Counted from the stretch's first letter, positions 3,001 to 37,983 are shown. The stretch is 64,000 bases of DNA from Oikopleura dioica (GCA_907165135.1 OU015566.1:6820001-6884000), one strand, 5' to 3'. Notes: a model not told the origin generated them from the sequence alone. Translations and numbers: made by a program.

Positions 3001-5922
3001 CTAATCAAAATCGAGAAAAATGAAGCTATTTTCTTTCAAAATGTGTGATGCCATCAAGCTAAGAAAATCAAATTTCCCAACACCAAATATTCAACTGCAT
3101 GATTTCCAAGAAAAATCATACTGTAAGTGCCACAAAATGAAGAAACTTACGATCTGGATCGGCTGTTTGATAACAGGGGCCAGGGCTGCCATTTGATTTC
3201 GATTTTGCTCAAAGTTAATGGACTCTTCAATAACAGTTTCTTCGTTATCTTCGAGAACCACAGGCTCATCCGCATCTTCATCGACCTTTCTGACGCCGAT
3301 TTTGACGATTCCTGGAGGCAGACCCTTGAGGACTTCGACGCAATCTTTTAGTGAGTAAACTCGCATGTCAAACTTGATCTCATTGACTCGGATGATCTGA
3401 TCGCCGGGCGAAAGGCGTCCGTCTTGATCAGCGACTCCTCCGGGAACCAAACCGCGGATTCTGAAAGTTCAAATAAATTAATATTCAAAATATAGATTCA
3501 TTTGTACCTAATACTATTTGCTCCATCTCTATCCGGCGCGTCGAGAATGGAAAAGCCGAGGCCAGAATTGCCCTTTTCAAGCTCAATCCAAACCAAGTCG
3601 TCTTCTTCTTCAGAATCCTCCGAGCTGACGCTGCTGTCTTCTGAAACGACCACAGTCTTGCCGATCGAAGCAGCCACCATGTTGTCACTTGTGACCACAG
3701 TTGGCACATATTCAGACATTGACGTTCCCGGACTTGCGGCCCACGTGACGTTCTCCTCTTTTTGCACGGTTTCTTCTTCAACCTTTCTCCGGGCGCAGAC
3801 GAGCACGACATGTTCAGGCAAAGATCTGATAATTTGCACAGCGGCGAGATGGTTCATTCCAATCAGTTTTTCTCCGTTTACTTCAAGTACTTCATCTCCA
3901 GCTTTGATTCCCGTCTTTGTTCCGACGGGGCCAGAAGGAGACACGGATCGAATGATATGTTTAAATTGTCCTTCGCTCTCCAGGCCTTCTACGTCGATTC
4001 CAAGTCCGGCGTTTTCGTACTCTTTCGTCAACTCCCCGACCTGAAAAACAATGATAAAGCATGCAAATTCACAAGCACCAGGGGATTAAAGCACCATCTT
4101 AGGTCACCATGAATACAAAAAAGGATTACCCTATCTGCAGGTACAGGATCATCTGGCCCACTTTCAAGCGCTTCAAGAGAAATACCAAGCCCTTGGCCTG
4201 GCTCTCTCGCAACTTGTTCTGTCTAATTTGGATAAATTAAAGAATGAATGCGCCTCACGCAATTTTATAAGACAAAAAAATCGATACTTACGATGATTTC
4301 GAATTTGTCGCCGACAATCTTTTGCCAATAATGGCTGAGTTGGGCGATTTGCTGATCGGTGAGTCGGGTCGATTTTCGCTTTCGTCGAGAAAGGGTTAAA
4401 TGGACCGAGTCGCCCGTATTCTGCAGCGCTTCCACGGCCTCTTCGGATCCAACTCCTTGTCCGTCAAGTCGAAGTCCATTCACAGCAATGATCTGATCAC
4501 CAGCTTCAATTCGTCCGTCATTTGCCGCTGGCGAGCCAGGGGTAACAGCTTTGACATAAATTCCATGCTGCGCGATTCCGGAAGATCCATCATTCACCCA
4601 TCCTGCGATATGAATTCCAATTCCGCCGGCGTTCTTCGTCAATTCTACATCAAACACCTCATCAGGCGACGTTTTCAACTGGTTAAAGGTTGGCAACTCG
4701 CCGCGGGCAATCTCTAGTTTGACCGTCGAGCCAGTTTCTTGCAGAATCGTCGCTGCTTCTTTTGAGCCCATTCCGGAGAGGTCGATATCGTTGATTTTGA
4801 GAATCGTATCTCCTGATTGAAGACGACCGTCTCGGTCTGCCAGGCCATCCGGAAGGATCGTTTTAATCTGAACACCCGTGGCCTTTCCACCAACGATTCC
4901 GAAACCAAATCCGCTTCCTTCATTGTGCAACACGACGATTTCCGAGTGAGCCCAGCGCTTTTCAGCTGGTTTCAAATCGACTTCGGATGCTTGAGATTCA
5001 GAATCCGAAAAGCGCCCTGGCTGCCGAGGAATGGGACCACGTGCAATGATCAGGTGAACGGAGTCCTTTACAGCTTGAAGCGCTGCGATCGCTTCTGTGT
5101 GCGAGACACTTGGGCCGAGGGGCTTTCCGTTGATGACAAGAATCTGATCTGATTCCTTTAGTCGACCATCTTCATCGGTAATCGTGCCAGGTTGAATTTC
5201 TTGGACAAAGATGCCCAATTCGCCGCGATTCTCCGATTCCAGGCCGACGACAGAGAAACCAAGTGATGTCCCCACTTGTTTTTCGAGAGTGATGTGTTCG
5301 GTTTCCCGCCCGTTGGCCATTTTCTCGACGAAATCATCGATCCAGCTTGGATCGTCGACCGAAGATGCGGATGAGCTCGTGTATTCTTCGGCTTATCAAG
5401 AATTGAAAAGCAGAAATTTCTGCATTTATTGAAGATATATTATCGTTAAAATAAGGGTATTTCTCCATTAATTTGGGGAAATAAGAGGGGAAACCAACTG
5501 ATAATGGGCATATTTGGGCCTCTTCATCCTGGGGGTTAATTTTTCTTTGTGAATAATTTTTCATAAATGAGATCATTTTCGAGCTAAGCATTAGCAAATA
5601 ATCTCGATTCCGCAAAATCAATTGATTTTGGCGATTAGCCGCTGTAGTAAAAACGACGATGATCAATATTTGCATTTCAATTCATTCCTAAATGTCCGTT
5701 CTCGTCGATTTTGAATTCGGAAAATTCTTCTGGGTTTTCTTGGATTGTTTCTTTGACCCTAGTGAGCGCCTTTTCTAAATGCAGGAGCTGGCGAAAGAGC
5801 GGATCGTTGATAAGCTGCTCTAGGCCGTCCAGGCCAGCTGCTTGGGCTCCGACTTGGGCTCGAATTCGCTGAAGCGCTCCGGCTACATCGTCGATTGAGG
5901 GAGATTGTTTCACCCCGGGCAT
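1..5922 (-). CDS. L27 + multi-PDZ scaffold protein (MPDZ/PATJ/InaD-like family), multi-exon, 3' end outside the window
   Basis: The N-terminal L27-like exon (MPGVKQSPSIDDVAGALQRIR...LINDPLFRQLL) is followed by PDZs matching MUPP1/PATJ PDZ1-5 (LGFSVVGLESENRGELGIFVQEIQPG; GFGFGIVGGKATGVQIKTILPDG; GIGIHIAGW; HIIRSVSPSGPVG; ELEKGNSGLGFSILD). About six further, more divergent PDZs follow. Confidence 0.9.
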
Positions 5923-6867
5923 TTTGGAAAAAGCCCAATTTACAGTCTGAATATGTAAAAGCATTTAATTTGAGTTCAACTGTGGTAAATTATTTTTTAA
6001 GATAAAATAATGTGTATTTTGCATTCTCCAGAATTGTCATCGAATCATTTTCAAGCAAGAAAAGAATCGTGATATGAGAAAAAGTAGTTTTGGATATGAT
6101 AATCTTTGAACTACTTCGACGACATAGTGATCGAATTCGAATTTAAAATGTAATAAGAATCATTTTATAACGAACATACATGTATCTTTTTAAATAAAAT
6201 TATAAATTTTTAGAAATCACGGACTTCAATGTGGCTCAAATGAAAATTCATTTGAAACATAATTATGTTTTTTATCATCTTTAACAATAATTTTCGGTAA
6301 GTAAATTCATGGGCAACAAATTCGACTATTTAGTGCAACAGGTGATCAGAAAATAAGCAAACATTTCCAAAGTTATTTTAGGACAGAAAATTTAAATTCA
6401 TTCTTCTGTTGAAAAAGTTTTATGGTTTCTTAATTTCTTCATTTTCATTTCTTCTTCAATCTCTATTTTTTTTCTCATAATATTAACAAATACCCATCAT
6501 CGAAAAAAATATCATTTTATTGAAAAGAGAGAGCTGATTCTGAATCAGCGTTTTCTTTTTCTCAGCGATTGAAAACGAGAAAAGAGTGAAAGGGAGAGAA
6601 TTCGCGTGGGCGAAATGGCTTACTGGCGCGATGCCACTTTCACTTCGCAAATTTCAAATTTCAATCCGTCTTTTTGGTATTTTAAAAATCAAGAAAAATA
6701 AAAGAGAAGAGGAATTTCGGGTTAATTTTTAACTCCTTGTCTGTTTCGATTCCTGGCCAGGTGAGCCAGTTTTTCTTTCTTTGCTTGAATTCAATATTTG
6801 CTCAATTTAGTAAATTTCATGCTGAAATGACTGTATGAAAAATGCTTGTAGAATGAATTCGGGAAAG

Positions 6868-7981
6868 ATGGGAGCAGCGGGCCTCGATCAGGAGATCGGG
6901 TACAATCCGATCTTGACCGCCACGGTCAAAAACGAGCAAGGAGTCCGAGATGTAGGAACGCTCTCAGAATATTCTCTCCAGGGTTCTGTAAAAGATGAAT
7001 TTGTCGAAGACGTGAAGAACAGACTCAGAGGATTGTGCGATAACGTCGAATGCGAACCGTTTATCGGTGAGTTTTGCAAATGATCGGATTTCCCTAAACC
7101 CCGGATTTCGCCACTGACGGAAATCAATACTGGTGGGAAAGACGTTTTGATTTCCGTCAACGGCAAAATTCGGGGTTTGTGAAAGCACGTTTTTGCAGGA
7201 AAATATTTGAACTTAAGACTGCTTTAGATCATGAAATCTCTTACTCCCTTCAATCTTCCTCCGGTAATGCTGTAACAATGCGTGTATCCCGTTCCTTGGC
7301 GCAAAGCAAAATGCCCTGGCAGTTGAAATACGTCGGAGCACTCGAAGTAGAAATTTATTTTCAACCCTTTTTCATTTAAAATTCTAGACAGGCAAAAACA
7401 AATCTTGCCTGATGAGAAATCAAGTAACAGTCGGCTGCTCGGAAAACGTCACTTCTTTCCTGACAGAATTGGGATTCAGAGCTGACACGGAATTTCTCAG
7501 CAAAGGATATCTCTACAGAAAAGGGAGGATAAAAGTCGTTCTATCGAAGCTTTGCAAAATGAAAGAACCAGGACAGCATCAGGAACAGAATCTTTTGCCG
7601 CTGACGAAAAGTCATCTTGTGGAAGTTTCAGTTACGACCCTCACGGGTGGAGAAGACCCAGGAAATGCTCTTAATCTTATCTTTTACGCGAACAGGCAGG
7701 ATGATTGCAATCGTCAGCTGTGGAAGTAGATAGTTATCTTAGAATAGAGGGTGCTGAACTTGCTATAAAAGCTGCTCAAGGTTTCAACTCATTTATTTTC
7801 AGACCTTTTTAAAATGAAACTGAAGAAACACATCCTGTTTAACCATCAATGAAATTTTTTATGTTGAGAGCATTTGACAGGCCCAGATCTAAAACATTTC
7901 GCGGAAATGCTGAAACCACAAGTGAAGCTTACAAAAGTCGATCACCGAGAAATTCAATCACATACACGCCCAAATTTCTGA
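6868..7981 (+). CDS. MED18: Mediator subunit 18, 4 exons
   Basis: EYSLQGSVKDEFVEDVKNRLRGLCDNVECEPFI-DHE, MPWQLKYVG, FLTELGFRADTEFLSKGYLYRKGRIKVVLSKL, SHLVEVSV and FAEMLKPQVKLTKVD follow the MED18 pattern in order. The start codon is uncertain. Confidence 0.92.
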
Positions 7982-8190
7982 GCTAGAAATGGCTACTTCA
8001 CTACACGATCTTCTTTTCAAAATAGAAGAGTCCACTGTTTCTTCTTTTCAATCGTATAAGTGCAATAAAATCAACCAATTTATTTATTCGGAAATATGAT
8101 ATATTTTAGTCAAGAATAGAGTACATGGCTTGTGCGAATTCTGCAGGTTTTTTCAAGACAGTCTTGTTGCACTGATGTGTGTTATTTTAT

Positions 8191-8502
8191 TCAGTGTTTG
8201 TGAATGCAACAAGTAGTCGCTGCAAGATAACTGACATACTCCATGAAATCTATTGATTCGCTCTCATCCCAATCCAAATCCTTGAGGAGTTTTTCGCCAG
8301 TATCTTCATCACCTGCATGGAGGGCTGCATCTTGGAGAGAAGGAAACTCCTCTGGAATAATCTTAAAGCAATTACGATCTCTAAATTCTAAAAGTACCTT
8401 CAATGAGACCTCTTAATTCCGCTTTATTAAGTTGCTTGTCTTCACCGGCTTGCTTGGCGAAAGTTTTGTAAATCAAAGTCATTGTTGCTGCAGATCACCC
8501 AT
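8191..8502 (-). CDS. S100-like EF-hand protein, copy 1 (1-nt frameshift near the start)
   Basis: MGDLQ[A]TMTLIYKTFAKQAGEDKQLNKAELRGLIE / EEFPSLQ...LLKDLDWDESESIDFMEYVSYLAATTCCIHKH. It has a pseudo-EF hand plus a canonical EF hand, and the same phase-1 intron as its paralogs. Confidence 0.8.
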
Positions 8503-8570
8503 ACTCTCAATAGCTTACGGACTTCTCTCTTATAAAGATATGGATGAAACGAAGAGAATACGGCAGTTTT

Positions 8571-8592
8571 ATACAAAAATAACTTCCGGTTT
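8571..8592 (-). promoter_or_regulatory. ETS-type CCGGAAGT motif plus TATA-like box upstream of S100 copy 1
   Basis: The minus strand reads ACCGGAAGTTATTTTTGTATAAAA. Equivalent motifs lie upstream of copy 2 (about 9181-9201, ACCGGAAGTATTTTTGTATATA) and copy 3 (about 10031-10050, GCGGAAGTAGCTCGGATATAAAA). Confidence 0.55.
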
Positions 8593-8806
8593 AATAAGAC
8601 GCTATGCATCCTTGCTTCATAAATGTCTATTTTTATCTTTTTTTAAAAACGTATCTAATTTTCCATAAGTATACCTTATAATGTATTATAGCACTTATTT
8701 ATCATCAAATTTTCAATATCGAGAAGTTAATTTATGCAGGCTTTTAATCATATTCGTGCAGAGATTTGCAGAAATTAACTCCTGTTTCAGTCCTTTTTTA
8801 ATTTTT

Positions 8807-9118
8807 TCATAGCATTTGGCCCGTTGCACAAATAAGTGCTGCAACCATTGTCACAAACTCAGTGAAGTTCACGTCTCCACTAGCGTCTTGGTCCAAGGCC
8901 TCGAAGATTTTGTCGACCGCATTTGGATCTTGTACACTTGCCAGCATACCAGCGAACTCATCATGTAAAACATTTTTGAAATTGGAAGTTCTTAATTTAT
9001 TACCATCAAGGAGAAGTCTCAACTCTCCTTTTGAGAGGGTCTCGTAGGGTTCTTCATTTGATGCATGCTGATGGAAAACTCCTATCAGCATAGCCATTGC
9101 GCTTTGCAAAGCTGACAT
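8807..9118 (-). CDS. S100-like EF-hand protein, copy 2
   Basis: MSALQSAMAMLIGVFHQHASNEEPYETLSKGELRLLLD...EFAGMLASVQDPNAVDKIFEALDQDASGDVNFTEFVTMVAAL is a typical S100 helix and loop layout. Confidence 0.9.
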   Translation of the reverse strand: MSALQSAMAMLIGVFHQHASNEEPYETLSKGELRLLLDGNKLRTSNFKNVLHDEFAGMLASVQDPNAVDKIFEALDQDASGDVNFTEFVTMVAALICATGQML

Positions 9119-9406
9119 GTACTCGACTTGGTTTTTTTGTATTTTACCGCTTTGGAGAAATGGATGAAAACGGGCAGCTATATACAAAAATACTTCCGGT
9201 TCAGGTGCCTGCTTTGACTGTATCCTCGGTTCATGAACGAACCTAATAAAAAGATCATCCTAACACTGCAAGTATGGTTATTTTCCAAAGAGGAGATATT
9301 AGAAATCGTCGCAGAAAGAAGCTTCGATATTTCATTTAAATTAACTTAATTTTCTCTTTCATTTCAAATGATGTAGATAAGAAAAAGTGGGTCCCTCTGT
9401 TGACCA

Positions 9407-9520
9407 TTACTGTTTGCAGAGCATTTCGTTCGCTACACAATCAAGAGCTGCGACCATTGTGACGAACTGTTGAAAATTCACATCGCCGGCGAAATTTGTA
9501 GCAAACCTTTGAAGTCGGCA
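9407..9520 (-). pseudogene. Relic S100 second exon
   Basis: DFKGLLQ, then a 1-nt deletion relative to the paralog, then GDVNFQQFVTMVAALDCVANEMLCKQ*. No matching first exon was found. Confidence 0.75.
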
Positions 9521-9648
9521 AAAGAATATATTTTCTAGCATTGCTTCAGGTTTTCTACATTTGTCTCGCAAGGCAAAAGCAACGCAGATATAATAGAAGT
9601 CGTTCAATTTTTTTTTTTGTATTTTTATTTCAGTTGCAGCCTAAAGAA

Positions 9649-9959
9649 CTACTGTGAGCACAACATTTCGTTCGTTGCCGCGGTAAGCGCTGCAACCATT
9701 GTGACAAACTCAGTGAAATTAACGCTTCCGTTTCCATCCTGGTCCAAGCCCTTGAAGATTTCGTCGACGACATTTTTATCTTTTGAGTTCCCCAACATAC
9801 TTCCGAATTCGGCTATGATATTTTTAAAGGTTTGCGACTTTTAGAAAGCTTACTCTCAAGGAGATTTTTTAGCTCTTCCTTGTTGAGTGCCTGATCTTGG
9901 CCACAATGCTTGGCGAAAACTGAGATGAGGCCTGCCATTGCTGATTGCAGAGCAGACAT
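9649..9959 (-). CDS. S100-like EF-hand protein, copy 3
   Basis: MSALQSAMAGLISVFAKHCGQDQALNKEELKNLLET / EFGSMLGNSKDKNVVDEIFKGLDQDGNGSVNFTEFVTMVAALTAATNEMLCSQ*, with a GT-AG intron at 9813-9853. Confidence 0.92.
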
Positions 9960-26759: not shown

Positions 26760-27987
26760 TTTAAAATTTTCGTAAATTGATCTCTTCGCTAAAAGTTTCA
26801 ACTTGCTGCAATACTCGATGGTGGTTGCTATTTATGTGCATCAGCACAAATATTTTTCAGCAGATTGATATCGTTACTATTGAAGCTGCTCCTACTCTTA
26901 CCTTCCTAGGATTGTTTGAAAGTGTTTATTTCAATTAAGACAGAAGGGACTATTAAGAGCTCAAAATTGAATCAACCAATTTCTATCAAAATCTTCTTCG
27001 CAAGTTTTCATCAAAGAACTTGCTGAGTTCAAAAAACGGGCAAGCTTAGCGAAAACTTGCTTTCTCCCGATTTCGGTAACCTTTTGAGAAAGAGTGAAAG
27101 ACATCTTTCAGTTACCGTATGCTCTCATTAAACAGCCAAGGGGACGCTACCTTGTTCTATTCGTACCTATCTTGCGTTCCTATCTGCCGCTTTTCCGTAG
27201 AAGCATCAGATATGATAAAAAGAGACGAGCTTGGCGAGAGCAGTTGTTTTCAAGACAGCCAAACAGATGTGGTCATTTGGGGATTGAGTCTTATAGGAGC
27301 TACCGTTTTCGTGGCAACTAGTAAAGTGAGCTTACTTTTGCACTTTATCGAAGACAAAAGATGGTACGGTGACTTCATGACTTTTGCGGTCACTCTAGCG
27401 ATGGGAACGATGTTTGCAGTGACTATCTTTCAGTTTATTCCAGAGAGCCTTCATTTTCTCCATGTCCAGGTTTAATCAATTTATCACCAAACAATAAAAT
27501 ATTTCAAGACGTACAATGTCTCTTGTGAGAGCTGTCACAAAGGCTTTTGGGCAAGCAGTATTGTTGACCGACATAATTGCTTGGCTATTTGCAGCATGGA
27601 ACAATTCGAAAGAAGTGAGCTTTACAGAATCGATGTCGGAGGTTCGAAGAAAGGGTTTCTTTTTTTTAACGATTTCAGGCGCTTCGTCTTTCATGAGCAC
27701 AATGACCGTCTCATACTTTTTCTTCATCGTCGTCTATGATGTCCAAAAGATCATCCAATGCATATTCTCTAGGGAATACACTACCCGATCTACAGATATA
27801 GAAGAAAGAATACTGAAAACATATGGCAGCAAAGAAGCTTTTAATTGTGACCGGACATGTTCAGAGCCGTGCACTTGCCAGGAAACTCATTTTGTCGAAT
27901 CCCGCATCAAAATAAGCAACTCAGTTGGGGCTAGCGCTAATGCTGAGGGCCGTAGACGAAGCACTTTTCGCTTGAAAGCTCAGGATT

Positions 27988-28446
27988 GGCCGGAAAAATA
28001 TAAATTTTTCGCCTTCGAACAGCCATAGCTCACGCTATACTATATGAAACCAAGGGATGAAGGTATCTTTCGAAAGCTCAGCTTCTGAGGATTGGGGGAA
28101 CGTAAAAATCATTTCGGAAAATCGACATTTCTGATTGGCCGAAAATTTGAAATAACTATTTTTGCCAGTCAACATCAACTTTTTTCAAATGTTTTTTCTT
28201 TCCCCCAATCCATAGAAACTGAGCTTTTTAAAAATGTATCAATCACGTGATTTCATTATCTCTCACGTGAGATATGGCAGTTCGTAGGAAATTCATAAAA
28301 ATGGTCTCAGAATCGCCCCAGGCAATGAAAAAAAGTTTTTTCCAGGTGATTTCTAGGTTTTCGATGATGAATAAAACGATCAACATAATGATTTTCCCCC
28401 TAGTTGAAATTTTTGTCAAAATCGAAAATTTATATTTTTTCCGACC
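27988..28446. mobile_element. 459-bp MITE with about 24-bp imperfect TIRs and a 3-bp ATT duplication
   Basis: The left end is GGCCGGAAAAATATAAATTTTTCG; the reverse complement of the right end is GGTCGGAAAAAATATAAATTTTCG. ATT lies at 27985-27987 and 28447-28449. The element is absent from copy B, and removing it restores QDWKFVNTDAW. Confidence 0.85.
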
Positions 28447-29305
28447 ATTGGAAATTTGTTAATACTGATGCATGGGTTATTCTTTTGACCACATCTTTCG
28501 AGTGCCTCATTGAAGGTATGCCGTACACAAATTAGTTCATTACTGTATTTCTCCAGGAATGGCCTTCACGCTGACATTGCAAGACGATATCACTGCTGGT
28601 TTTTCAGTTCTATTTGCGATGCTATTAAAGATGATACCAGTACGAATCTATGAGTCTCACATGACATGACCTTATTTAGCAAAAACTCGGGAACGCCGTG
28701 ATCTTGATGCGCTCTGGCCTGTCTCCTTTTTGTCAAAGTGCTTTGGTTCTCACTTCAGTGTCTGCTATCTATCCAGGCGTTTGTATCGCGATGCTTCTTA
28801 GAAATATGCACATAAAAGCAGCTGTAAAGGCCAAGTTCTTGAGAGAGGCGATTTTCTGGCAGTTAGATTTTCTGGCAGTTAGACTTTCTGGCAAAGGCGA
28901 TTTTCTGGCACTGCCAGAAAATCTAACTTCCAGAAAATCGCCTTTGCCAGAAAATCTAACTGCCAGAAAGTCTAACTGCCAGAAAATCGCCTTTTTAGTA
29001 TGCATATTATTTGAAACTCTGCAAAAAACTATTTTTAATAAAATCATTTATAAATTCGAAAAACTGGTGATTATCACACAAATTTCATTCCGGAGCAGTT
29101 TCAGCAGGAGTTTGCACCTTTCGACGGGAGCGTTTGATCTAAAAGCCGACTATTCAGGGCGCTAAAAAAGACGACGAATTTGGAATTGAAATTTCTGCGC
29201 TAAAAATAGAATGAGGGCAGCATCCACAGTTCGTTCTTGCTATTTTCGGAGTAACAAACGGGTTAACAGGCAGCTGAAAAGTTAGATTTTGATTTTTCTG
29301 AGAAA

Positions 29306-30227
29306 ATGGAGGATGATGAAGAGAATGCGGATAGAAAAATGTTGAAACTGACACCGATTCCACCACCTTCTGAGGAAGAATTTTCAGGATAGTTTTATAA
29401 CAAGTTCAGTTTCAAAAAGCATTTGCGTGCGCCATTATCTCAGTGGGTGCTCACTGTGACCAAGTACTCGAAATCAGATGCAAACACCGGGTGATTAACA
29501 CAGAAATTCCCGGAAGAAGCTGATTTATGTTTGCTACAGCTATTAATCTTGAATAAATGGGTCAAAAGTGGCCTTTGTCAATGAATTTTTATAAAACGTG
29601 TAAGAAAACATTGGTGGTACTGTCGAAAACCCTGCCTTGGTAACGATTCAACGAAACTCAAAAAACAATGCATCCTTCCTCGTCAAAGTTGCTTCCAGAT
29701 CATTTGCTTTCAAAGCAAGAAAAGCGAAGAAAACGATTCTGCATTCTAAAAACGACGATCCTGACTTCCGTTTCAAGATGCGAGTCGAGTGTGAAAATCA
29801 ATCATATTCGAAAGACGCTTCATTCCGCTGTTCAACGAAGATTTGGATGTTTGCAAAAGTTGTTGATATGGAATCTCCTCGTTTTTTTGAGCTCAGCAAT
29901 TGGCGATGTGGAAAGCTAGAGTCGAAAGTAGACATTCACATGAATAAATGTCTGAAGAACGATGCACTCGAAAAGAAGCGATTACAGTACGCAACGACTG
30001 TGTCCATGCTCAACAGGAACCAAATTCGCCCAAAAAGTCAACAGACAATTCGTGGAGAAGTTCAAAAAGATTCACAACTTTCGAGCATGGAAAGAGGCAA
30101 TCTTTTCACGAAAAAGGAGATGAGACGTCTTGCTCAGAATTCCAGAAAGTACGAAAGAAAAATAAAGGCCGCTACAGTTCCTGATCCTCGACGCTTGGAA
30201 GACTGGATGACAGTACTAGGAAAGTGA
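29306..30227 (+). CDS. Probable N-terminal (DNA-binding) part of the MULE transposase
   Basis: An ATG exon (MEDDEENADRKMLK...) and a 196-codon ORF with a C-x12-C...H-x3-C arrangement and a basic RRLAQNSRKYERKIK...PDP segment, on the same strand as and upstream of the DDE core. The assignment is an inference. Confidence 0.5.
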
Positions 30228-30689
30228 TTTATTTGACCGAGCACAGATGCACGAAAGAAATGACAGTGAATATAGTTTAGTTAAATCTTGAGTTGAATTA
30301 TCCTTTAGAGCTTGGGACATCCTTGATACGGTAGAAAAGCAGAGGCCGTGCGTTCTTCTTTTTCCTTTGTCTTTCCCTGAACTAACATAAATTCGAAGCC
30401 GCAAGCGGCTTCTCTTACGATGCAGGAGTTCTTGGGGCTTCGAGGACCCGAGCAGCGGGAGCTCCAGCTCGAGCGGGTGCTTTCTTTGCTGTTGTAGAAA
30501 CTGCAGCGAATTTGAAGCGGGAGTCACACCAGCGTTCGCTCTCGCATGAACGGGACCAAGAGGTTCTCCCTTTGAAATCAGAATTGAAAAAGGATTTCGC
30601 GTTCTTTTTGATTTACCTGATAGTTAGCGTCGAAAAACTTTTTAAACCATTGAACGAAGTGTGAGACACTTGACAGTGGTGAAAGGAAA

Positions 30690-31712
30690 TTACTTTGCAT
30701 GACGTTGTCGCCACGGAAGCAGATTTCTCCTTTTCCTTCGCGCGCATAATAATCCATGTCGGGCACGTCAACAAGTTTAAAAAATATTAGCCATCGGCAA
30801 ATAGCTGAACCAGACGTCGCTTGTTTTCCAAGGCTCTTTAACCGAGAAGATTGTAATGCCACAGCAGACGGTGCAGATGTTCTTGTGAGTCAAGACGACG
30901 CCTTTCGGATCGCCAGTCGTGTCGGATGTGTAATTGATCGTAGCAATGTCTGAATAATGAAATTAAATGATCGCCCCTATTTTTATCATTTTTACCTGAA
31001 GAAGTCGGCGGAACATTATCAAACGAGCTGTCTTTTCCGATTGCAATAAAATCGTCGAAACTTATGATTTTATAATTGGAGGACTTGACCTTCTTGAATT
31101 TTCGAAACACAACGATTGTTTGAAGATGAGCAGGCTTGATTTTGAGAATGAGGTCAAGTTTCTTTTGATTTTGAACGAAGCAGATTGGAGCTTCAATCTG
31201 AAGAAAAAGTAAAAATAATCTCGTAAAGAAGTTGTAAACTTACGTGCTCGAGAATGTATTTGACTGCTTGTTCACCAAAAGTATCGTAAAGCGAAACATT
31301 GCATATATTTTGATAGTATCCTCCAATGATTACTGCGTCGTATTCGTAGCAATTCGACGAGTAGATCGCAATTTTGCTTTCTCCACTGATAAGTCCGTGC
31401 TTTTTCAGTGAATTCGCCAGGTATTGAGATGTTGCAGCGAACTCGCCATAAGTACGGGTCGTGTAATCTGTCAAATCTGGCGTCGGAGTGCCTCAAATGA
31501 TAGCATTATCACTGGCGGTCTCTCTTCCTCGCTGGAAGCACTCAAGAATTGTCTGAATAACTGTAAAGAAAGTTCTGAGTGATACGCTTTACCTGTGGAT
31601 AATCAGCTGGCAGAGTCCAGAGTCCTTTCTTCTCGCAGAGAATATTGTGTCTTGCGAAGGTTTCAGAATCTGCTTCATAACTTTGTGGCGCGTCAACGTA
31701 GTCTAATTTCTT
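30690..31712 (-). pseudogene. Decayed long-chain acyl-CoA synthetase (ACSL-like) fragment inside the MULE
   Basis: TILECFQRG; KIAIYSSNCYEY; VSLYDTFGEQAVKYILEH; IATINYTSDTTGDPKGVVLTHKN; WFSYLPMA; KLVDVPDMDYYAREGKGEICFRGDNVMQ. Introns are retained. It has an in-frame TGA, a G-to-D change in the P-loop and a large internal deletion. Confidence 0.92.
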
Positions 31713-32012
31713 GTTTCTGTGTAGAGTTATAATTTTGATGAAGACAAACCTTATCTACGCCCATTTTTTTTGAACGAGTTTTGCAAGACTTTGAAGTTAT
31801 TGACATATTCGTGCTCGTGTTTTGCATTGTACTTTACTGTCTTTAGTCGGATGGAACCTAAACCAAATGTAGCTTGATTAAAAACGATTCGAAAGATGAG
31901 GGGTAAGGTGGAGACAACGAGGACATCATTTTTGTTTCACGAAACGAACATTGAAAAGTAATAATTCATTAATAAATCACGAAAAGGCGATGGTGAAACA
32001 AAATGGATTCTA

Positions 32013-33368
32013 ATGAATGAGTTTCTTTCGCCGGAACAACGAAGCCCGATATGGGATGAAGCTCTAGCTTTTGCGACTCAACACGATTTGCGCATGCTGA
32101 CCTCTTCAAAACACTGGTTTGTTGACGGTAAATTCTTTACGAAAGGCCAGCAAAAGAAGTTTGGCTACCGTCAACTCCTCATTATTGGATCAAGAGACCG
32201 AGATGATAGTGTTAATCCTAGATTCTTTATTATTCTCAAGGGTCAGTCTAAAGAAGGCTACAAGATTGTCTTTGAGGCTTTAAAGGAAATGATCAATATT
32301 GAAAATTTTGAACTTACTTGGTTCGGCAGCGAATTTGTCGTGTGTAATAACGTTGATGAGGACCACAATCGGCCGTTCGGTAGTTTTGAATAGCAGAGCA
32401 GCCGATTTTCCTGAAAAAACTGTAAATTGATCTACAAAAAGAAACTTTGTCCTGATTCTGAATTTACAACTGTCTCGTCCGATTTCGAACCTGGGCTCAG
32501 AAATTCGATTCGCGAAACATGGCCGGAGAAGAATCTACGCATGGTTGGGTGCTACTTTCATTGGTTACAGAGTGTTAGAAGATATTTACAAAGTCATGGA
32601 CTGTTGGCACTCTGGGAGAAAAATGGAAAGATACTCCAAGCACTCATCCATGCGATCCCATTCATTCACTTGACCGAACCTACATTCTACGACACATTTA
32701 TGCAGCTTTTGCGTCGAACACTTGATGAACTGTCTACACCACTAATCAAAGACGAGATTAATGAGTTCTACAGATATCTTTCTACGACGTACTTGAATGA
32801 CGATGCTAAATTCCCTCCTAGTTCATGGGCCCTTGCATTATCGATAGGAGCGAGGAATGGTTCAAAATTCTTGACTAATAACAGTCTTGAAATCATGGTA
32901 AGTTACCTTTTTTTCGATGGGAAATCTTGTAAAAACATCGAATTCGTGAAGATGCGATTCCAACTAAAATTAAATGTTTAGAACTCATCCCTGGTGGATC
33001 AAGGAATCAACAATGCGACAGAGCTATCTACGGTCATCTCCATTGCTAATGGCTTTAAAAGTGAAAGCTTCAGTACGGAAATTGCTAAGCTTGAGAGCAA
33101 CAGCCAGCAAAGTACTAAAAATGACAGATTGTGCGCCTTAGTTGCGGTTGTACGCTACGAGCAGCTAGCAAGATTTGACAAAAAATGCGCAGAAAATGGC
33201 TCAATCGAAGAAGCAATTGTTTCTGTCGGCTTCGGCTTGATGAGGGCCAGATCAAAGGCCGAGTCATTGAAATCTACTCAGAAACTCCGACATTTTATCA
33301 ACAACGCCACGCAACCAGAAACTGCTGTATTTCAAAATTTGATTAAAGAATCAACAGCTGACGTATAG
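32013..33368 (+). CDS. MULE DDE transposase catalytic region (with introns)
   Basis: WFVDGKF (D1), SSDFEPGL (D2), GCYFHW (CxxH) and TNNSLE (E), preceded by ALAFATQHDLRMLTSSKHW. Confidence 0.92.
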
Positions 33369-33424
33369 TTACTATTTTTTATACAAAAATAAAAATTATT
33401 TAGTCATACCAGTTTCAAGAAGCA

Positions 33425-34556
33425 ATGCCTGTGATGTCCCCAGTTCGCGATGAGCAAGAAACAGCTGGTGAGCAAGTTGACCCAGATCCTTTCGCTCAGC
33501 AAGGAGGAGAATTCGATTTGAGAAGAGTTGCGGCGCCAATCGCTCAGCCAGTTCAAAGAGTGGAAAGAAGAGTCGATGAGGAGACGAGCAATGATGAAGT
33601 CGATGTGCCAGCTGTTATCCATGAGTTCGACCCACCTCCAGTGGACTCTTTACCGTCGGACAATGAGGATCGTGAGCCTGAAAACTGTAATATATCAAAA
33701 ATGTAAATATCAAAAATTTAATATTTCTAGTTGAAAAATCGCCATCTCCAATACATTGGGAACGACTTCTGGATAAAACCGATGAGATAGATGAAACGAT
33801 CAGAAAACAGTTTCCAAATCGTCCTTCGTCTTCAGAATCGGAGCAAGGTAACTGTCCATATTTAAAAAATAAATGACTTTCATTTAAGAAAATGACGAAG
33901 CCGGACAAGCTAATCGTTCTCGTCCAACATCTGATTCTTACCGGAATTTTGATGACAGAACTAGTCCCGAAAAGCTGGTTCTATCTGAACCCAAGCAGCC
34001 ACGGAAGTATATTCGCAGCGCAAAATCCGCAAAACAGCGCAAAACGCGGGATCTTTCATTGTCAGATTCTGAATCGGATCGTAAGTTTAGTTTTATCAAG
34101 CAGAATGTTAATTATTCTAGATGAGCGCCCCGAATCTTCGCAAAATACGCGTAGTTTGTGCGCAAAAGTGAAGCGGAATGCGAAAAAATCAACCTATTGC
34201 GAGCATGATTCCCCACCAAAAAAGAAAAAGAAGAAAACTGAAGCCGAAGTGCGTTTGGCAGCCCAAATTGCGAAAGAAAAGAAAATTCTTAAAGAAAGAA
34301 ATCGAAAAAAAAGAGAAAATGATCCTAAGGTAATGCTTGTATGTTTCTTTAAGAAAATAGCAGAATATTTAGGGCTACTATGCTGATATAGCAAATAAAC
34401 GGCGTCAAACCATTCAAAGAAAAAAAAGAACAAAATGAAGAGTTGATCGCAGAGTTACGGGAAGAGCTGGAAAAAATGAAGGCGGAAAATGCGAAATTGC
34501 GAAAACGCGAAGAAATGAGAAAAGCAGATATCCCAGGATTGTTTACACGTATATAA
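33425..34556 (+). CDS. MULE-borne accessory gene: acidic/Pro-rich N-terminus, poly-Lys NLS, C-terminal coiled coil (about 5 exons)
   Basis: Segments MPVMSPVRDEQE..., EKSPSPIHWERLLDKTDE..., DSPPKKKKKKTEAEVRLAAQIAKEKK..., EELIAELREELEKMKAENAKLRKREE...* are separated by short GT-AG introns. Confidence 0.65.
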
Positions 34557-34746
34557 TGGTTTCTTATTTAATTGTATTTAATTAGAATAACTTGATAAAT
34601 AATAAAAAGACGATGACGATTTGATGCGCCAATTAAAAGAAGTACTCGCCACTTCCGACGAAGAAGACTTCTGATGTTCTATAAAAAAAGCTCCTTACAT
34701 TTTCATCAAACTCGTTACATTCGTTACGGACGATTTCCATAGGTCA

Positions 34747-34999
34747 GAGCCGTTACAAAATTACCGGGGCAAACTTGCTGTTGCTCTAGCGCCTAAGGGT
34801 TACATTGTAGCCCAAGACATCTTTATACGTATCGACGGAGAATCTCAAGCTCTATGCCAGTATCATCTCAGATTTTCGAGATCTCAAAAAATTTCGGATT
34901 TATGGCGATTTTTCATTTTTCAAAGGACTACGTGTCCCTAATTCAGCCAATCACAGCACTGTATTTGACGCATTTGCACCGGTAAATTTGTAACGTCTC
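34747..34999. mobile_element. Nested 253-bp inverted-repeat element inside the MULE
   Basis: GAGCCGTTACAAAATTACCGGGGCAAA versus right-end reverse complement GAGACGTTACAAATTTACCGGTGCAAA (24/27). No clear TSD. Confidence 0.55.
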
Positions 35000-36534
35000 A
35001 GTTAATTGAAGCCGCTGAAAAATAAACCAATAAGTGAAAAAATTGATTGCAAAAGAAAATTCGAAACTCCTTTCCTATATATTTTTCTTCTTCGTTGGAG
35101 CTCCTAAAGATGGAATCGAGCACGTCGTTTTGTTGATTCATCGAGTTCCTAGAATTCGGAAGCTTTCTTTGTTGTCTGCGAGAAGAATACTGGCAGGAAG
35201 TTCTTCAATATCTTTCGAGGAGTTCAAAATCATGTTAAATTAAAGAAAGGGCACAATTATAACGGGTAAATTCTTCTGGAGGCCCACAATTATAACGGGT
35301 TCAATATTCTCCCCGTTGTTATTTTATATGGTCAATTTTCAACACTGAGTCCTTTCTGAAATTGAAATTCTGAATTAAAATTTAAAAATGATAGACAGTA
35401 TTTTAGTTTCGCAACTCGTAAAGCTTTAATGTCAAAAATTGAAAAAAAATAGAAACATTTAACTTATCAACGGTTTGTGCATCGAAAGAGAGAAGAAAAC
35501 GCATCATACATTAAATACGAAAGGTTGAAGTTTGGAGGCGAAACAAAGCGGAAACACAGTTCATAAGTTTTAAGCGAATTGGGCAAAATTTTATAGGCAG
35601 TTAATTCTTCTCTAATTCCTCTGGCAGTTAATTCTTCTCTGATCTTCATCATTTCCGCTTGAAAAAAACCGTTGATTTATCAACTAAATTCAGGCGAGCA
35701 CAGCGCGGCGAATAAGGGAGGAGCGCGCCGCCCACGCGCGCCTGACTATTTCTCAGAAGAATCAGAAGATGAATTCCGAGCTCTTCTTCTCTCCGTTTTT
35801 TTATCTTCCAGGATCATTAACTATAGATGTGAAATCAAAAGAGGCGATTTTCTGGCAGTTAGACTTTCTGGCATATTAGATTTTCTGGCATTGCCAGAAA
35901 ATCGCCTTTGCCAGAAAGTCTAACTGCCAGAAAATCTAACTGCCAGAAAATCGCCTCCCTCCAAGTTCTTTGCGGCTCTTGTTGGAATGTTTCTTTACCT
36001 TTCCTTGGCGAGGATGTTTCCTGCCATGCAGGTGAAAATATTAGATCGTACACGGGTAATAAAAATCATAGGAGCTTGTGGATGCACCGCCAAAAGAAAG
36101 CCGAATGTCTGTCAATTCATATCGTCAACAGACAAAGCGTAAAACTTTCAGGCGTTTGTTCATTGCTAATGTTGGCTATGTCATTGCTTTCTTCATCCTA
36201 GCTCCTCTCGTAAGCTTGTTTTCTAAGGATTAGAGTGATTTTTAGATTTATTATGAAAATCAAATTCAACAAAAAATCGAAGAAATCATCTGCGGTGACA
36301 ATTAAAGATCGTATTTGTCTGTATTTCTGGAAAGCAATAAATTCATAATTAGAACATGTTGACGTCGACTGCCGACTCTTATTTTTTCTGACTTTTGAAG
36401 CAAACCGAAAGACATCTTATAGTGACCCAGGACTCTCATTAATGACCCAAGGGAAACATTCCTCGTCTTATCGTTATTTCAAAGCATATAAAGCAGGGTT
36501 CATTCTCAACCATCGCATTTCGGAAAACGCAGGG

Positions 36535-37983
36535 ATGATTAAAAGAGACGAGCTTGGAACGAGCAGTTGTTTCCAGGACAGTCAAACAGATGGGGTTATT
36601 TGGGGACTGAGCCTCGTTGGCGCAACAGTTTTCGTAGCAACTAGCAAAGTGAGTTTACTCTTGCACTTTATCGAAGACAAAAGATGGTACGGAGACTTCA
36701 TGACGTTCGCGGTCACTCTCGCGATGGGAACGATGTTTGCAGTGACCATATTTCAGTTTATTCCAGAGAGTCTCCATTTCCTCCACGTCCAGGTTGTACT
36801 ATTAATCTTTTGAAAAATAAAGGAAGTCAAGACTTACAACGTCTCTTGTGAGAGCTGCCACCAGGGCTCTTGGGCAAGTAGCATCGTTGATCGGCATAAT
36901 TGCTTGGCAATTTGCAACAGGGAGAAATATCAAGGCAGCGTATTGTACAGAATCGATGTCGGAGGTTTGTCAAGAGATGATTAATTTGATTTTTAACAAT
37001 TTCAGGAGCTTCGTCTTTCATGAGCACAATGACCGTCTCGTACTTTTTCTTCATCTTCGTCTATGATGTCCAAAAGATCATCCAATCCATATTCTCAAAA
37101 GAATACAACAGCGGATCGAACTACAAGCGGCTCGACAGAAGATCCACAGTCAAAATAAACAACTCGGTCGGACTTGGTGCAAACGTCACCGATAGAAAAC
37201 CAAGAAGAAGAATTGCAAAAGAAAACACTTCTGGATTGAAAGCTCAGGACTGGAAATTGATTGATACCGATGCTTGGGTGATTCTTCTGACGACATCTTT
37301 TGAATGCTTTATTGAAGGCAAAGAAAAAAGTAGATTGCTTCGTTACCCTAATTTTCCAGGAATGGCCTTTACGCTGACATTACAGGACGATATTGGGGCT
37401 GGCTTTTCAGTTTTATTTGCGATGCTATTAAAGATGATCCCAGTAACAATCGACGGTTCTGACATGACTTAACCTTATTCAGCAAAAACTCGGCAACGCC
37501 GTGATTTTAATGCAGTCTGGTCTGTCTCATTTCTGGGAAAGTGTTCTTGTACTAACTTCAGTATCGGCGATATACCCAGGTGTTTGTATCGCGATGCTTC
37601 TCAGAAATATGCACATAAAAGCAGCTGTAAAAGCGAAGTTCTTCGCTGCTCTCACTGGGATGTTTCTGTACATTTCACTAGCCAGAATGTTTCCAGCCAT
37701 GCAGGTGAAAAAATGTCATAAAAACATCTGATGGAAATTTTAGGAACTCGTGGATGCACCGCCAAAAGAAAGCCGAGTCTCGGCAAAAGCATATCATCAA
37801 CTAGCAAAACGCAAAGTATACTGGCGTCTATTTATTGCTAACGTTGGATTTGTCAGTGCTTTCTGCATTCTAGCACCTCTTGTAAGTACCTTGGTATTTC
37901 TTTGGAATCAAAAGATTCTTTAGATTTATTATGAAAACAGCATCCAAGAAAAAATAGAAGAAATCATCTGCGGTGAAAATTAG
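36535..37983 (+). CDS. SLC39/ZIP LIV-1-like membrane protein, copy B, apparently intact, with a non-canonical metal site
   Basis: TM2 TFAVTLAMGTMFAVTIFQFIPESLHF, TM4 AWVILLTTSFECFIEGMA, TM5 LKMIPQKLGNAVILMQSGLS and TM7 FFAALTGMFLYISLARMFPAM align with the ZIP8/ZIP14 pattern. Confidence 0.88.

Follow-up and report, generated by a model that had tools for sequence, protein, structure and literature searches.

We analyzed a window of 64,000 nt from chromosome 1 of Oikopleura dioica OKI2018_I69 (OU015566.1, positions 6820001-6884000; coordinates below are counted from the first letter of this window), in which one of two tandem ZIP transporter genes, here copy A, is interrupted by a complete 7,121-bp Mutator-like element (MULE). 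The element contains a transposase gene together with an antisense fragment of an acyl-CoA synthetase (ACSL) gene of the host. We think it probable that this is an apparently autonomous and recently moved cut-and-paste Mutator transposon of the Okinawa lineage of O. dioica, and that its transposase gene has a probable intron in which the cargo is carried. The insertion site and the ends of the element, including the terminal inverted repeats (TIRs), are organized as follows, with sequence junctions written as a slash throughout.

28698-28840, plus strand: ZIP exon of copy A, upstream part, interrupted by the element
28832-28840, unstranded: target-site duplication, left copy, 9 bp, CAAGTTCTT, same letters as 35962-35970
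28841-35961, plus strand: complete MULE (Foldback/Phantom-like), 7,121 bp
28841-28992, unstranded: left terminus, with an 86-nt TIR (28841-28926) in a 150-nt foldback of 16-nt subrepeats GATTTTCTGGCAGTTA
34676-35840, unstranded: 3' non-coding subterminal region without a long open reading frame (ORF)
35841-35961, unstranded: right terminus, a foldback with an 86-nt TIR (35876-35961)
35962-35970, unstranded: target-site duplication, right copy, 9 bp, CAAGTTCTT
35971-36027, plus strand: ZIP exon of copy A, downstream part, ending before a GT donor at 36028

The element interrupts a coding exon of a tandem ZIP gene

The ZIP frame ...KAAVKAKF/FAALVGMFLYLSLARMFPAMQ is recovered once the element and one copy of the duplication are omitted, and then reads ...NMHIKAAVKAKFFAALVGMFLYLSLARMFPAMQ. 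The tandem paralog at 37251-37982, which is uninterrupted at the corresponding point, is collinear with the exon reconstructed in this way through the insertion point (80% aa and 78.6% nt identity). Because the reconstructed frame is collinear with this paralog, whose annotated product contains a PF02535 Zip domain, we conclude that the element interrupts an otherwise open coding exon in one of the two tandem ZIP genes. The length of 7,121 bp, the perfect 9-bp target-site duplication and the restored frame bear out the first-pass annotation of this window, which had placed an element at 28841-35961 inside a ZIP coding exon.

We also considered whether the element could behave as an introner that is spliced from the ZIP mRNA, and rejected this since no splice-site pair restores the ZIP frame. 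Specifically, exact removal by splicing would require GT..AA or TT..AG, the GT in the left duplication combined with the AG in the right duplication removes 1 nt too many (-1 nt), and the GA at 28841 combined with the AG at 35964-65 leaves +5 nt in the ZIP frame.

The two tandem ZIP copies (27212-27780 plus 28449-36304 for copy A, and 36535-37107 plus 37251-37982 for copy B) share 78-84% nt identity. Copy A has ~525 extra bases between 27780 and 28449 that are without a counterpart in copy B, and the public annotation holds no gene model for copy A.

The element extends from GAGAGAGG to CCTCCCTC (first letters GAGAGAGGCG, last letters CGCCTCCCTC), and its TIRs at 28841-28926 and 35876-35961 are 98% complementary over 86 nt, with mismatches at positions 4 and 71. 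Each end is a foldback of ~120-150 nt made of the 16-nt unit GATTTTCTGGCAGTTA, which occurs eight times in the window versus 0.02 expected, with every occurrence inside the element termini. As single-stranded DNA, the left terminus forms a predicted hairpin of -73 kcal/mol (z -19) and the right terminus one of -50 kcal/mol (z -13). An Rfam scan of the element gave just sub-threshold miRNA-like matches, located on the perfect hairpins and on both strands; a tRNA scan of the element found none, and a scan of JGI metagenomes with a 23-mer of the TIR gave 0 matches.

Five essentially identical copies lie on three chromosomes

Additional copies were located with a 184-aa core ORF of the element, for which a full scan of protein representatives led to an annotated O. 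dioica OKI2018_I69 protein. The entire 7,121 bp recurs at four further loci with 99.86-99.93% identity and with the same cargo, giving the following set of copies and 9-bp duplications.

L001 (the window locus), chr1: CAAGTTCTT
L002, PAR: CACTTCACG
L003, PAR: CTATCTATC
L004, chr2: TGGAAATCG
L006, PAR: GAAAAATAA

A perfect 9-bp duplication, distinct in each case, flanks all five copies (the chance of one such perfect repeat is ~4e-6), their termini fall at the same two bases, and the loci have no sequence in common outside the TIRs. A single substitution (29031) is found between the five copies, the remaining differences all being homopolymer lengths, which are expected to vary between copies in a Nanopore-based assembly. 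With one substitution among 5 x 7.1 kb on three chromosomes, the element has transposed very recently, and its TIRs, transposase and cargo are transposed together. The concern attached to the first-pass annotation, that TIRs and transposase might belong to separate insertions with other target-site duplications, is excluded by these five whole copies with duplications of their own. The youth proposed there holds as well, on the strength of the single substitution and not of the two TIR mismatches from which, along with the intact duplication, it had been read: both mismatches are identical in 5/5 copies, which makes them a trait of the family rather than a clock.

Three of the five copies (L002, L003 and L006) reside on the PAR chromosome (OU015568.1). 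All four copies outside the window are intergenic, with L003 and L004 lying 166-300 bp from the nearest gene ends.

DNA sequencing runs were examined as Logan unitigs and contigs, with reads placed on window positions 28400-34399. In run X1, 100%-identical unitigs cover the element interior at a depth of ~540-590 and two flank haplotypes occur at a depth of ~95-125 each, a ratio that suggests roughly five haploid copies, depth not being strictly a copy number. In run X5, four contigs with differing left flanks diverge exactly at 28840/28841, and because all of them break there the element boundary at this point is confirmed. An X1 flank unitig with three variant letters (28763, 28799 and 28801) ends at ~28841; this is no more than suggestive, in that alleles with and without the element would part at such a point. 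At 32908 an X1 short-read unitig has one T fewer than the window, and at least some of the homopolymer differences are probably assembly errors.

These runs also show uneven depth along the element. In X1 and X5 a contig exits the element after 29633 with a loose end, CTCCGTTTTTT, that equals 35789-35799 (chance ~0.003), suggestive of a non-autonomous derivative of ~966 bp with an internal deletion. Over 29000-29633 the element is covered 3-8 times as deeply as in its interior. In each of the three DNA runs, those without the catalytic exons among them, the stretches 29400-29599 and 34014-34060 have a much greater depth than other parts of the element, and they are common to other repeats in the genome; 34014-34060 has loose ends at both sides and overlaps a CAGCGCAAAA tandem repeat.

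The transposase gene is open when predicted GA-AG introns are removed

The transposase gene was compared with that of a sister family known from contigs of two metagenomes (L005 and L007, 99.7% alike), which matches exons 1-3 at 68-79% nt identity, the homology covering 29602-30236 and 31966-32909. The gene is predicted to consist of the following parts.

29306-29387, plus strand: possible first coding exon, starting at an ATG, proposed from the frame
29388-29604, plus strand: candidate GA-AG intron after the possible first exon, in frame, joining it to exon 1 to give 899 aa from the ATG
29605-30219, plus strand: transposase exon 1, coding for the N-terminal region, in which C/C/H/C residues are conserved; identity with the sister family 76%
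30220-31986, plus strand: cargo slot and probable GA-AG intron 1, ctag/GAAAGT ... GAAAAG/gcga, borders conserved and content unrelated in L005/L007
31987-32285, plus strand: transposase exon 2, with the first catalytic aspartate, D251 (DGKF, within WFVDGKFF; codon 32124-32126)
32286-32441, plus strand: probable GA-AG intron 2, aaag/GAAATG ... AAAAAG/aaac, containing in-frame stops
32442-32897, plus strand: transposase exon 3, with the second aspartate, D318 (DFE; codon 32481-83), C341xxH344 (CxxH; codons 32550-61) and E454 (TNNSLE; codon 32889-91)
32898-32981, plus strand: intron 3, GT-AG, 84 nt, used in annotated models P0002 and P0151
32982-33362, plus strand: transposase exon 4
33404-34435, plus strand: C-terminal tail exons, five exons with 40-44-nt GT-AG introns

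Read without splicing, the transposase frame has stops at 30225 and at 32391-32426. Introns of the GA-AG type are frequent in O. dioica, with the donor context AG/GAA (PMC7072748), and the predicted GA-AG donors at 30220 and 32286 fit this context. Removal of 30220-31986 is in frame and yields ...LEDWMTVL/GDGETKWILMNEF..., and both borders of this slot are conserved with the sister family, the left one as CTAG/GAAAGTGATTTA and the right one as TAAATCACrAAAAG/GCGATGG. The sister homology ends ~15 nt past ctag/GAAAGT and restarts ~20 nt before AAAAG/GCGATGG. Judged from these sequences, 30220-31986 is probably a GA-AG intron of the transposase gene. The stops that are left fall within a second GA-AG intron at 32286-32441. 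In the sister family stops begin at 32301, and the donor at 32286 has a slight advantage in phmmer scores. With the predicted introns removed, the frame is open for 871 aa, or for 899 aa when the possible 5' exon at 29306-29387 is included, and we infer that the GA-AG introns would be spliced and that the protein would be made and active.

Other splice sites were considered for both introns. A canonical GT-AG intron 1 (30213-32021) is in frame, yet deletes the conserved GDGETKWILMNE, and the GA-AG intron was preferred. For intron 2, the stops of the sister family from 32301 onward led us to reject the canonical GT donors at 32337 and 32340 as well as a donor at 32301 (tatt/GAAAAT), where tatt/GAA also departs from the AG/GAA context.

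The 184-aa core piece has 215 relatives at E<=1e-3, some of which carry the Pfam MULE domain with or without FLYWCH, and of ten relatives that were scanned, eight score above the cut-off of PF10551. The spliced model aligns collinearly with Pfam MULE relatives at up to 78 bits, its D, D, CxxH and E matching DGTF, DFE, CxFH and TNNxE. The DDE transposase described in the first pass is therefore present with all of its catalytic motifs, the D, D, CxxH and E; the frame that carries them is not continuous, and requires introns.

Comparison with the sister family gives a ratio of nonsynonymous to synonymous substitution rates (dN/dS) of 0.13 over 453 codons of exons 1-3, with codon-position differences of 91/67/194, indicating, at the level of sequence, that both halves of the split transposase gene have been kept under purifying selection. 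When calculated by part, dN/dS is 0.07-0.21 for both gene halves and 0.09-0.21 for exon 1. The exon-1 ORF (29637-30224) shares residues C52, C65, H101 and C105 with the sister family. No Pfam match to FLYWCH was found in the element, and hhalign of the element to a FLYWCH-region profile of the relatives gave a probability of 0.2%; an AlphaFold2 model of the N-terminus has a pLDDT of 49.5, which is too low for use.

The region downstream of exon 4 had been read as a second multi-exon gene. This view is not upheld, as annotated models P0002, P0151 and P0153 splice the region in frame to the C-terminus of the transposase, by which it forms the acidic/basic tail of that protein. These models splice 33362 to 33404 across a 41-nt GT-AG intron that contains a TAG stop, and continue with five or six more exons separated by 40-73-nt introns. 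A search for homologs of the tail found the element's own copies alone.

Host gene fragments occupy the slot between exons 1 and 2

The slot between exons 1 and 2 contains 1,729 nt in the window versus 1,003 unrelated nt in the sister family. In the window it is composed of three parts.

30237-30661, unstranded: older non-ACSL slot DNA, left
30662-31717, minus strand: captured ACSL genomic fragment, 1,056 bp, two segments joined at 30781/30780, with 539 nt of the parent absent
31718-31965, unstranded: older non-ACSL slot DNA, right; sister homology restarts at 31966

The ACSL cargo is antisense to the transposase and matches PF00501 AMP-binding (E 6.7e-12), with its ORF pieces covering profile positions 18-97, 182-218 and 353-381; no PDB relative of the piece was found. 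Its parent is present on L008, a 4.2-kb Logan contig in which ACSL adjoins a sulfotransferase gene and which is without MULE DNA. L008 912-1845 corresponds to window 31717-30781 in a single 937-nt alignment that includes exons and introns, and L008 2385-2503 corresponds to window 30780-30662, with 539 parent nt missing at the joint. Since introns are retained and 539 nt are missing relative to L008, the capture occurred at the DNA level, with a later or concurrent internal deletion. The host-gene fragment that the first-pass annotation had noticed inside the element is thus an ACSL fragment, collinear with a parent contig free of transposon DNA. Alongside this parent, lower-depth variant unitigs are present in X1, X2 and X5.

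A contig from DNA run X2 joins 30658 to 31719, and the 1,060 nt that it skips are the ACSL piece almost to the base. Reads of RNA run X28, which probably come from another lineage, join 30655 to 31747. Because both skip the ACSL piece, the slot must once have existed without ACSL, with the fragment nested into it later. The slot of the sister family contains a different cargo, a fragment of VPS28 (PF03997, E 9.5e-13), and the ACSL and VPS28 fragments are both antisense to the transposase. This comparison indicates that at least two independent captures have occurred at one slot, or perhaps three, should the older slot DNA likewise come from the host; a 103-aa ORF in that older DNA gave no lead in an Atlas search. 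The cargo was probably acquired by repair or template switching after excision. We tentatively suggest, with slightly more doubt than confidence, that the long GA-AG intron may be a reusable cargo bay, in which uptake would be repeated and always antisense, cargo would be spliced out so that the element stays autonomous, and of which the ACSL-free slot seen elsewhere would be a survivor.

Samples X2 and X5, which are without the catalytic exons (at >=90% identity), retain exon 1 at 94% and exon 2 at 98%, with matches at 29568-30285 and 31816-32346 and a slot without ACSL. They represent another population, with a variant of the element that is related and may be ancestral. At L004, the annotation (3817-9843, minus strand) fuses ACSL cargo exons to host exons beyond the left TIR in a 382-aa model that has a weak LDL-receptor class A match and that is either a chimeric transcript or an annotation artefact.

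Alternative explanations

Several observations weigh against the view that the element is autonomous and recently moved. The open frame rests on two or three non-canonical introns that are absent from the public annotation, and the public gene models begin at M 32700, past the two catalytic aspartates. The 184-aa raw piece matches PF10551 at 14 bits (E 0.072, profile positions 66-98) relative to a cut-off of 27.6, a sub-threshold score; the domain is split by the predicted intron 2. The profile search proposed in the first pass therefore has a divided outcome, in that the window piece falls below the gathering score and the relatives with which the spliced model aligns rise above it. None of the listed RNA runs contains the transposase, and X28 yields 46 partial reads of 90-95% identity, none of them over exon junctions; these reads probably derive from another lineage and from host genes and are uninformative on transposase splicing. 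Homopolymer differences fall inside coding exons in two copies: the window has a private extra A at 34420 (A9 vs A8 in the four others), with which its tail frame ends at 34435, 54 residues early, the other copies continuing to ~34675, and L006 has -2 T and -1 A in exons 1 and 4 (at the counterparts of window 29882-83 and 33180). Such differences could be genuine frameshifts or errors of Nanopore sequencing. Finally, no contig among those listed bridges 28840/28841, and a scan of JGI metagenomes with a 25-mer of the empty ZIP site, predicted to read ...AAGGCCAAGTTCTTTGCGGCTC..., gave 0 matches and no empty allele.

More than 20 further X28 reads match just the 40-nt stretch 32322-32362 of intron 2, with loose ends of ~124 nt on both sides, and seem to come from an abundant transcript of other origin that shares this short piece.

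Some of these observations would be explained if the element were a non-autonomous or dead derivative, with a transposase destroyed by cargo and stops and with five copies mobilised in trans by another MULE, an explanation that we consider unlikely. It draws on the raw-frame stops, on the RNA runs examined, where no transcript evidence was found, and on an annotation that begins past both catalytic aspartates. However, the stops sit between conserved AG/GAA...AG signals and their removal keeps the frame, and the coding differences among the copies are limited to homopolymer lengths. Furthermore, the low dN/dS of both halves was obtained against a family that has the same split and other cargo, indicating that the split gene stayed selected after the slot arose.

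A further explanation is that the element codes for two proteins as in MuDR, the first a DNA-binding protein encoded by exon 1 and terminated by the TGA at 30225, the second a catalytic protein that starts at the ATG at 32013, with the cargo in an intergenic spacer. In keeping with this, the TGA directly follows ...VLGK in both families and the window family has the ATG at 32013. However, the sister family has GCG at the position of 32013 and no in-frame ATG upstream, so that the second half of the gene is without a start codon conserved between window and sister family, and amino acid conservation (GDGETKW) reaches upstream to the AG at 31985-86. The TGA falls within the donor consensus G/GAAAGTGA, a position that explains its conservation. 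Because the TGA lies in the donor and the second half has no conserved start codon, two separate proteins are disfavoured, and we regard this explanation as very improbable.

It is hardly credible that faulty assembly or segmental duplication, in place of transposition, produced the insertion or its multi-copy state. The assembly is indeed Nanopore-based, its copies differ at homopolymers and no listed contig bridges the junction. However, the five loci on three chromosomes share the same two end bases, are flanked by a different perfect 9-bp repeat each and have nothing in common outside the TIRs, and the interior is recovered at multi-copy depth in independent short-read unitigs, which break at 28840/28841.

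Proposed mechanism and relation to known elements

For an autonomous Mutator transposon with intronic cargo, the reading we favour, the behavior of the family leads us to expect that the DDE transposase would bind the 16-nt subrepeats in the foldback termini, excise the element and reinsert it via a 9-bp staggered cut. Such an insertion into the coding exon of one tandem ZIP gene would have broken copy A. The first long intron would serve as the cargo slot, with the ACSL piece nested in older foreign DNA, and because the cargo would lie in an intron it would not have destroyed the transposase. The 7.1-kb unit could thereby keep moving and spread host gene fragments through the genome.

By its sequence features, namely 9-bp duplications, long TIRs and a DDE signature, the element belongs to the Mutator superfamily. 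The Phantom/Foldback branch is suggested by its termini, which are composite foldbacks, and by its relatives, which are of the MULE type and in some cases have FLYWCH. The closest described anatomy is that of Tm1 of Meloidogyne (PMC3169594). Tm1, Phantom and Foldback elements likewise have foldback termini of 13-16-nt subrepeats, 9-bp duplications without a target consensus, a transposase with a MULE domain, and short derivatives that have lost internal sequence (PMC3169594; PMC6446971). Unlike Tm1 and Phantom, the Oikopleura element is without a detectable FLYWCH, has many introns including those of the GA-AG type, and carries host fragments within its gene. The Phantom group has been recorded from Tunicata, and evidence for MULEs in chordates is described as limited (PMC6446971). 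Among animal MULEs, Muta1 of Aedes aegypti has been characterised as active (PMC5225508; PMC5499845). The Oikopleura element shares signs of recent activity with Muta1, which is compact, with a single ORF and no cargo, whereas the activity of the Oikopleura element would follow from its identical copies.

The first-pass annotation had called the element Pack-MULE-like with a transposase of its own. The description is apt for a young MULE that contains host fragments and a transposase gene, and does not extend to a Pack-MULE in the strict, non-autonomous sense: a host fragment lies between TIRs, its parent has no TIRs and the capture took place at the DNA level, but a transposase, absent from strict Pack-MULEs, is present. 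Pack-MULEs of plants (Jiang et al. 2004, as cited in PMC6446971) and Pack-TIRs of animals (Tan et al. 2021, PMC8277862), the latter also non-autonomous, similarly hold host fragments with introns between Mutator-type TIRs, with 9-bp duplications and a TIR-free parent, and the cargo-bearing unit can be multicopy, as is the Pack-TIR Ssk-FB4 in Drosophila. The text of the 100-genome Pack-TIR survey does not mention Oikopleura (PMC8277862). In contrast to these non-autonomous elements, the Oikopleura element keeps a selected transposase gene, with antisense cargo in a probable intron.

Autonomous plant MULEs with extra host-derived ORFs exist, for example the Ulp1-bearing KI-MULEs. Extra ORFs in MULEs are mentioned in PMC6446971. 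KI-MULEs also combine a transposase and acquired host sequence in a single mobile unit, but their extra ORF lies beside the transposase, whereas the Oikopleura cargo is fragmentary, antisense, located in a probable intron and different between sister families. A meeting of larvacean DNA transposons with non-canonical splicing has likewise been described for introner-like miniature inverted-repeat transposable elements of Fritillaria borealis (bioRxiv 10.1101/2025.08.15.670264). Those elements are spliced from host genes at their TIRs, whereas the predicted non-canonical introns in Oikopleura sit in the transposon's own gene. Our literature search found no paper describing MULEs in Oikopleura. 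Gene capture between TIRs is itself known, and what is new here is cargo within a probable intron of a still-selected transposase gene, with the cargo differing between sister families.

Implications

In this element a chordate has a MULE whose five copies are essentially identical, and one of these copies has recently knocked out a transporter gene copy. Gene capture by MULEs has been described mainly for non-autonomous plant elements. If the predicted splicing and activity are true, the element could explain how an autonomous transposon holds cargo and yet keeps its transposase, and would provide a natural before-and-after series for studying capture. It would also be a candidate for use as an endogenous transposon tool in Oikopleura, a chordate model whose genome is unusually scrambled. 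If the intron does act as a cargo bay, then chordates would possess self-propelled 'Pack-MULEs' that duplicate and shuffle host exons and that may feed antisense RNA against the parental genes.

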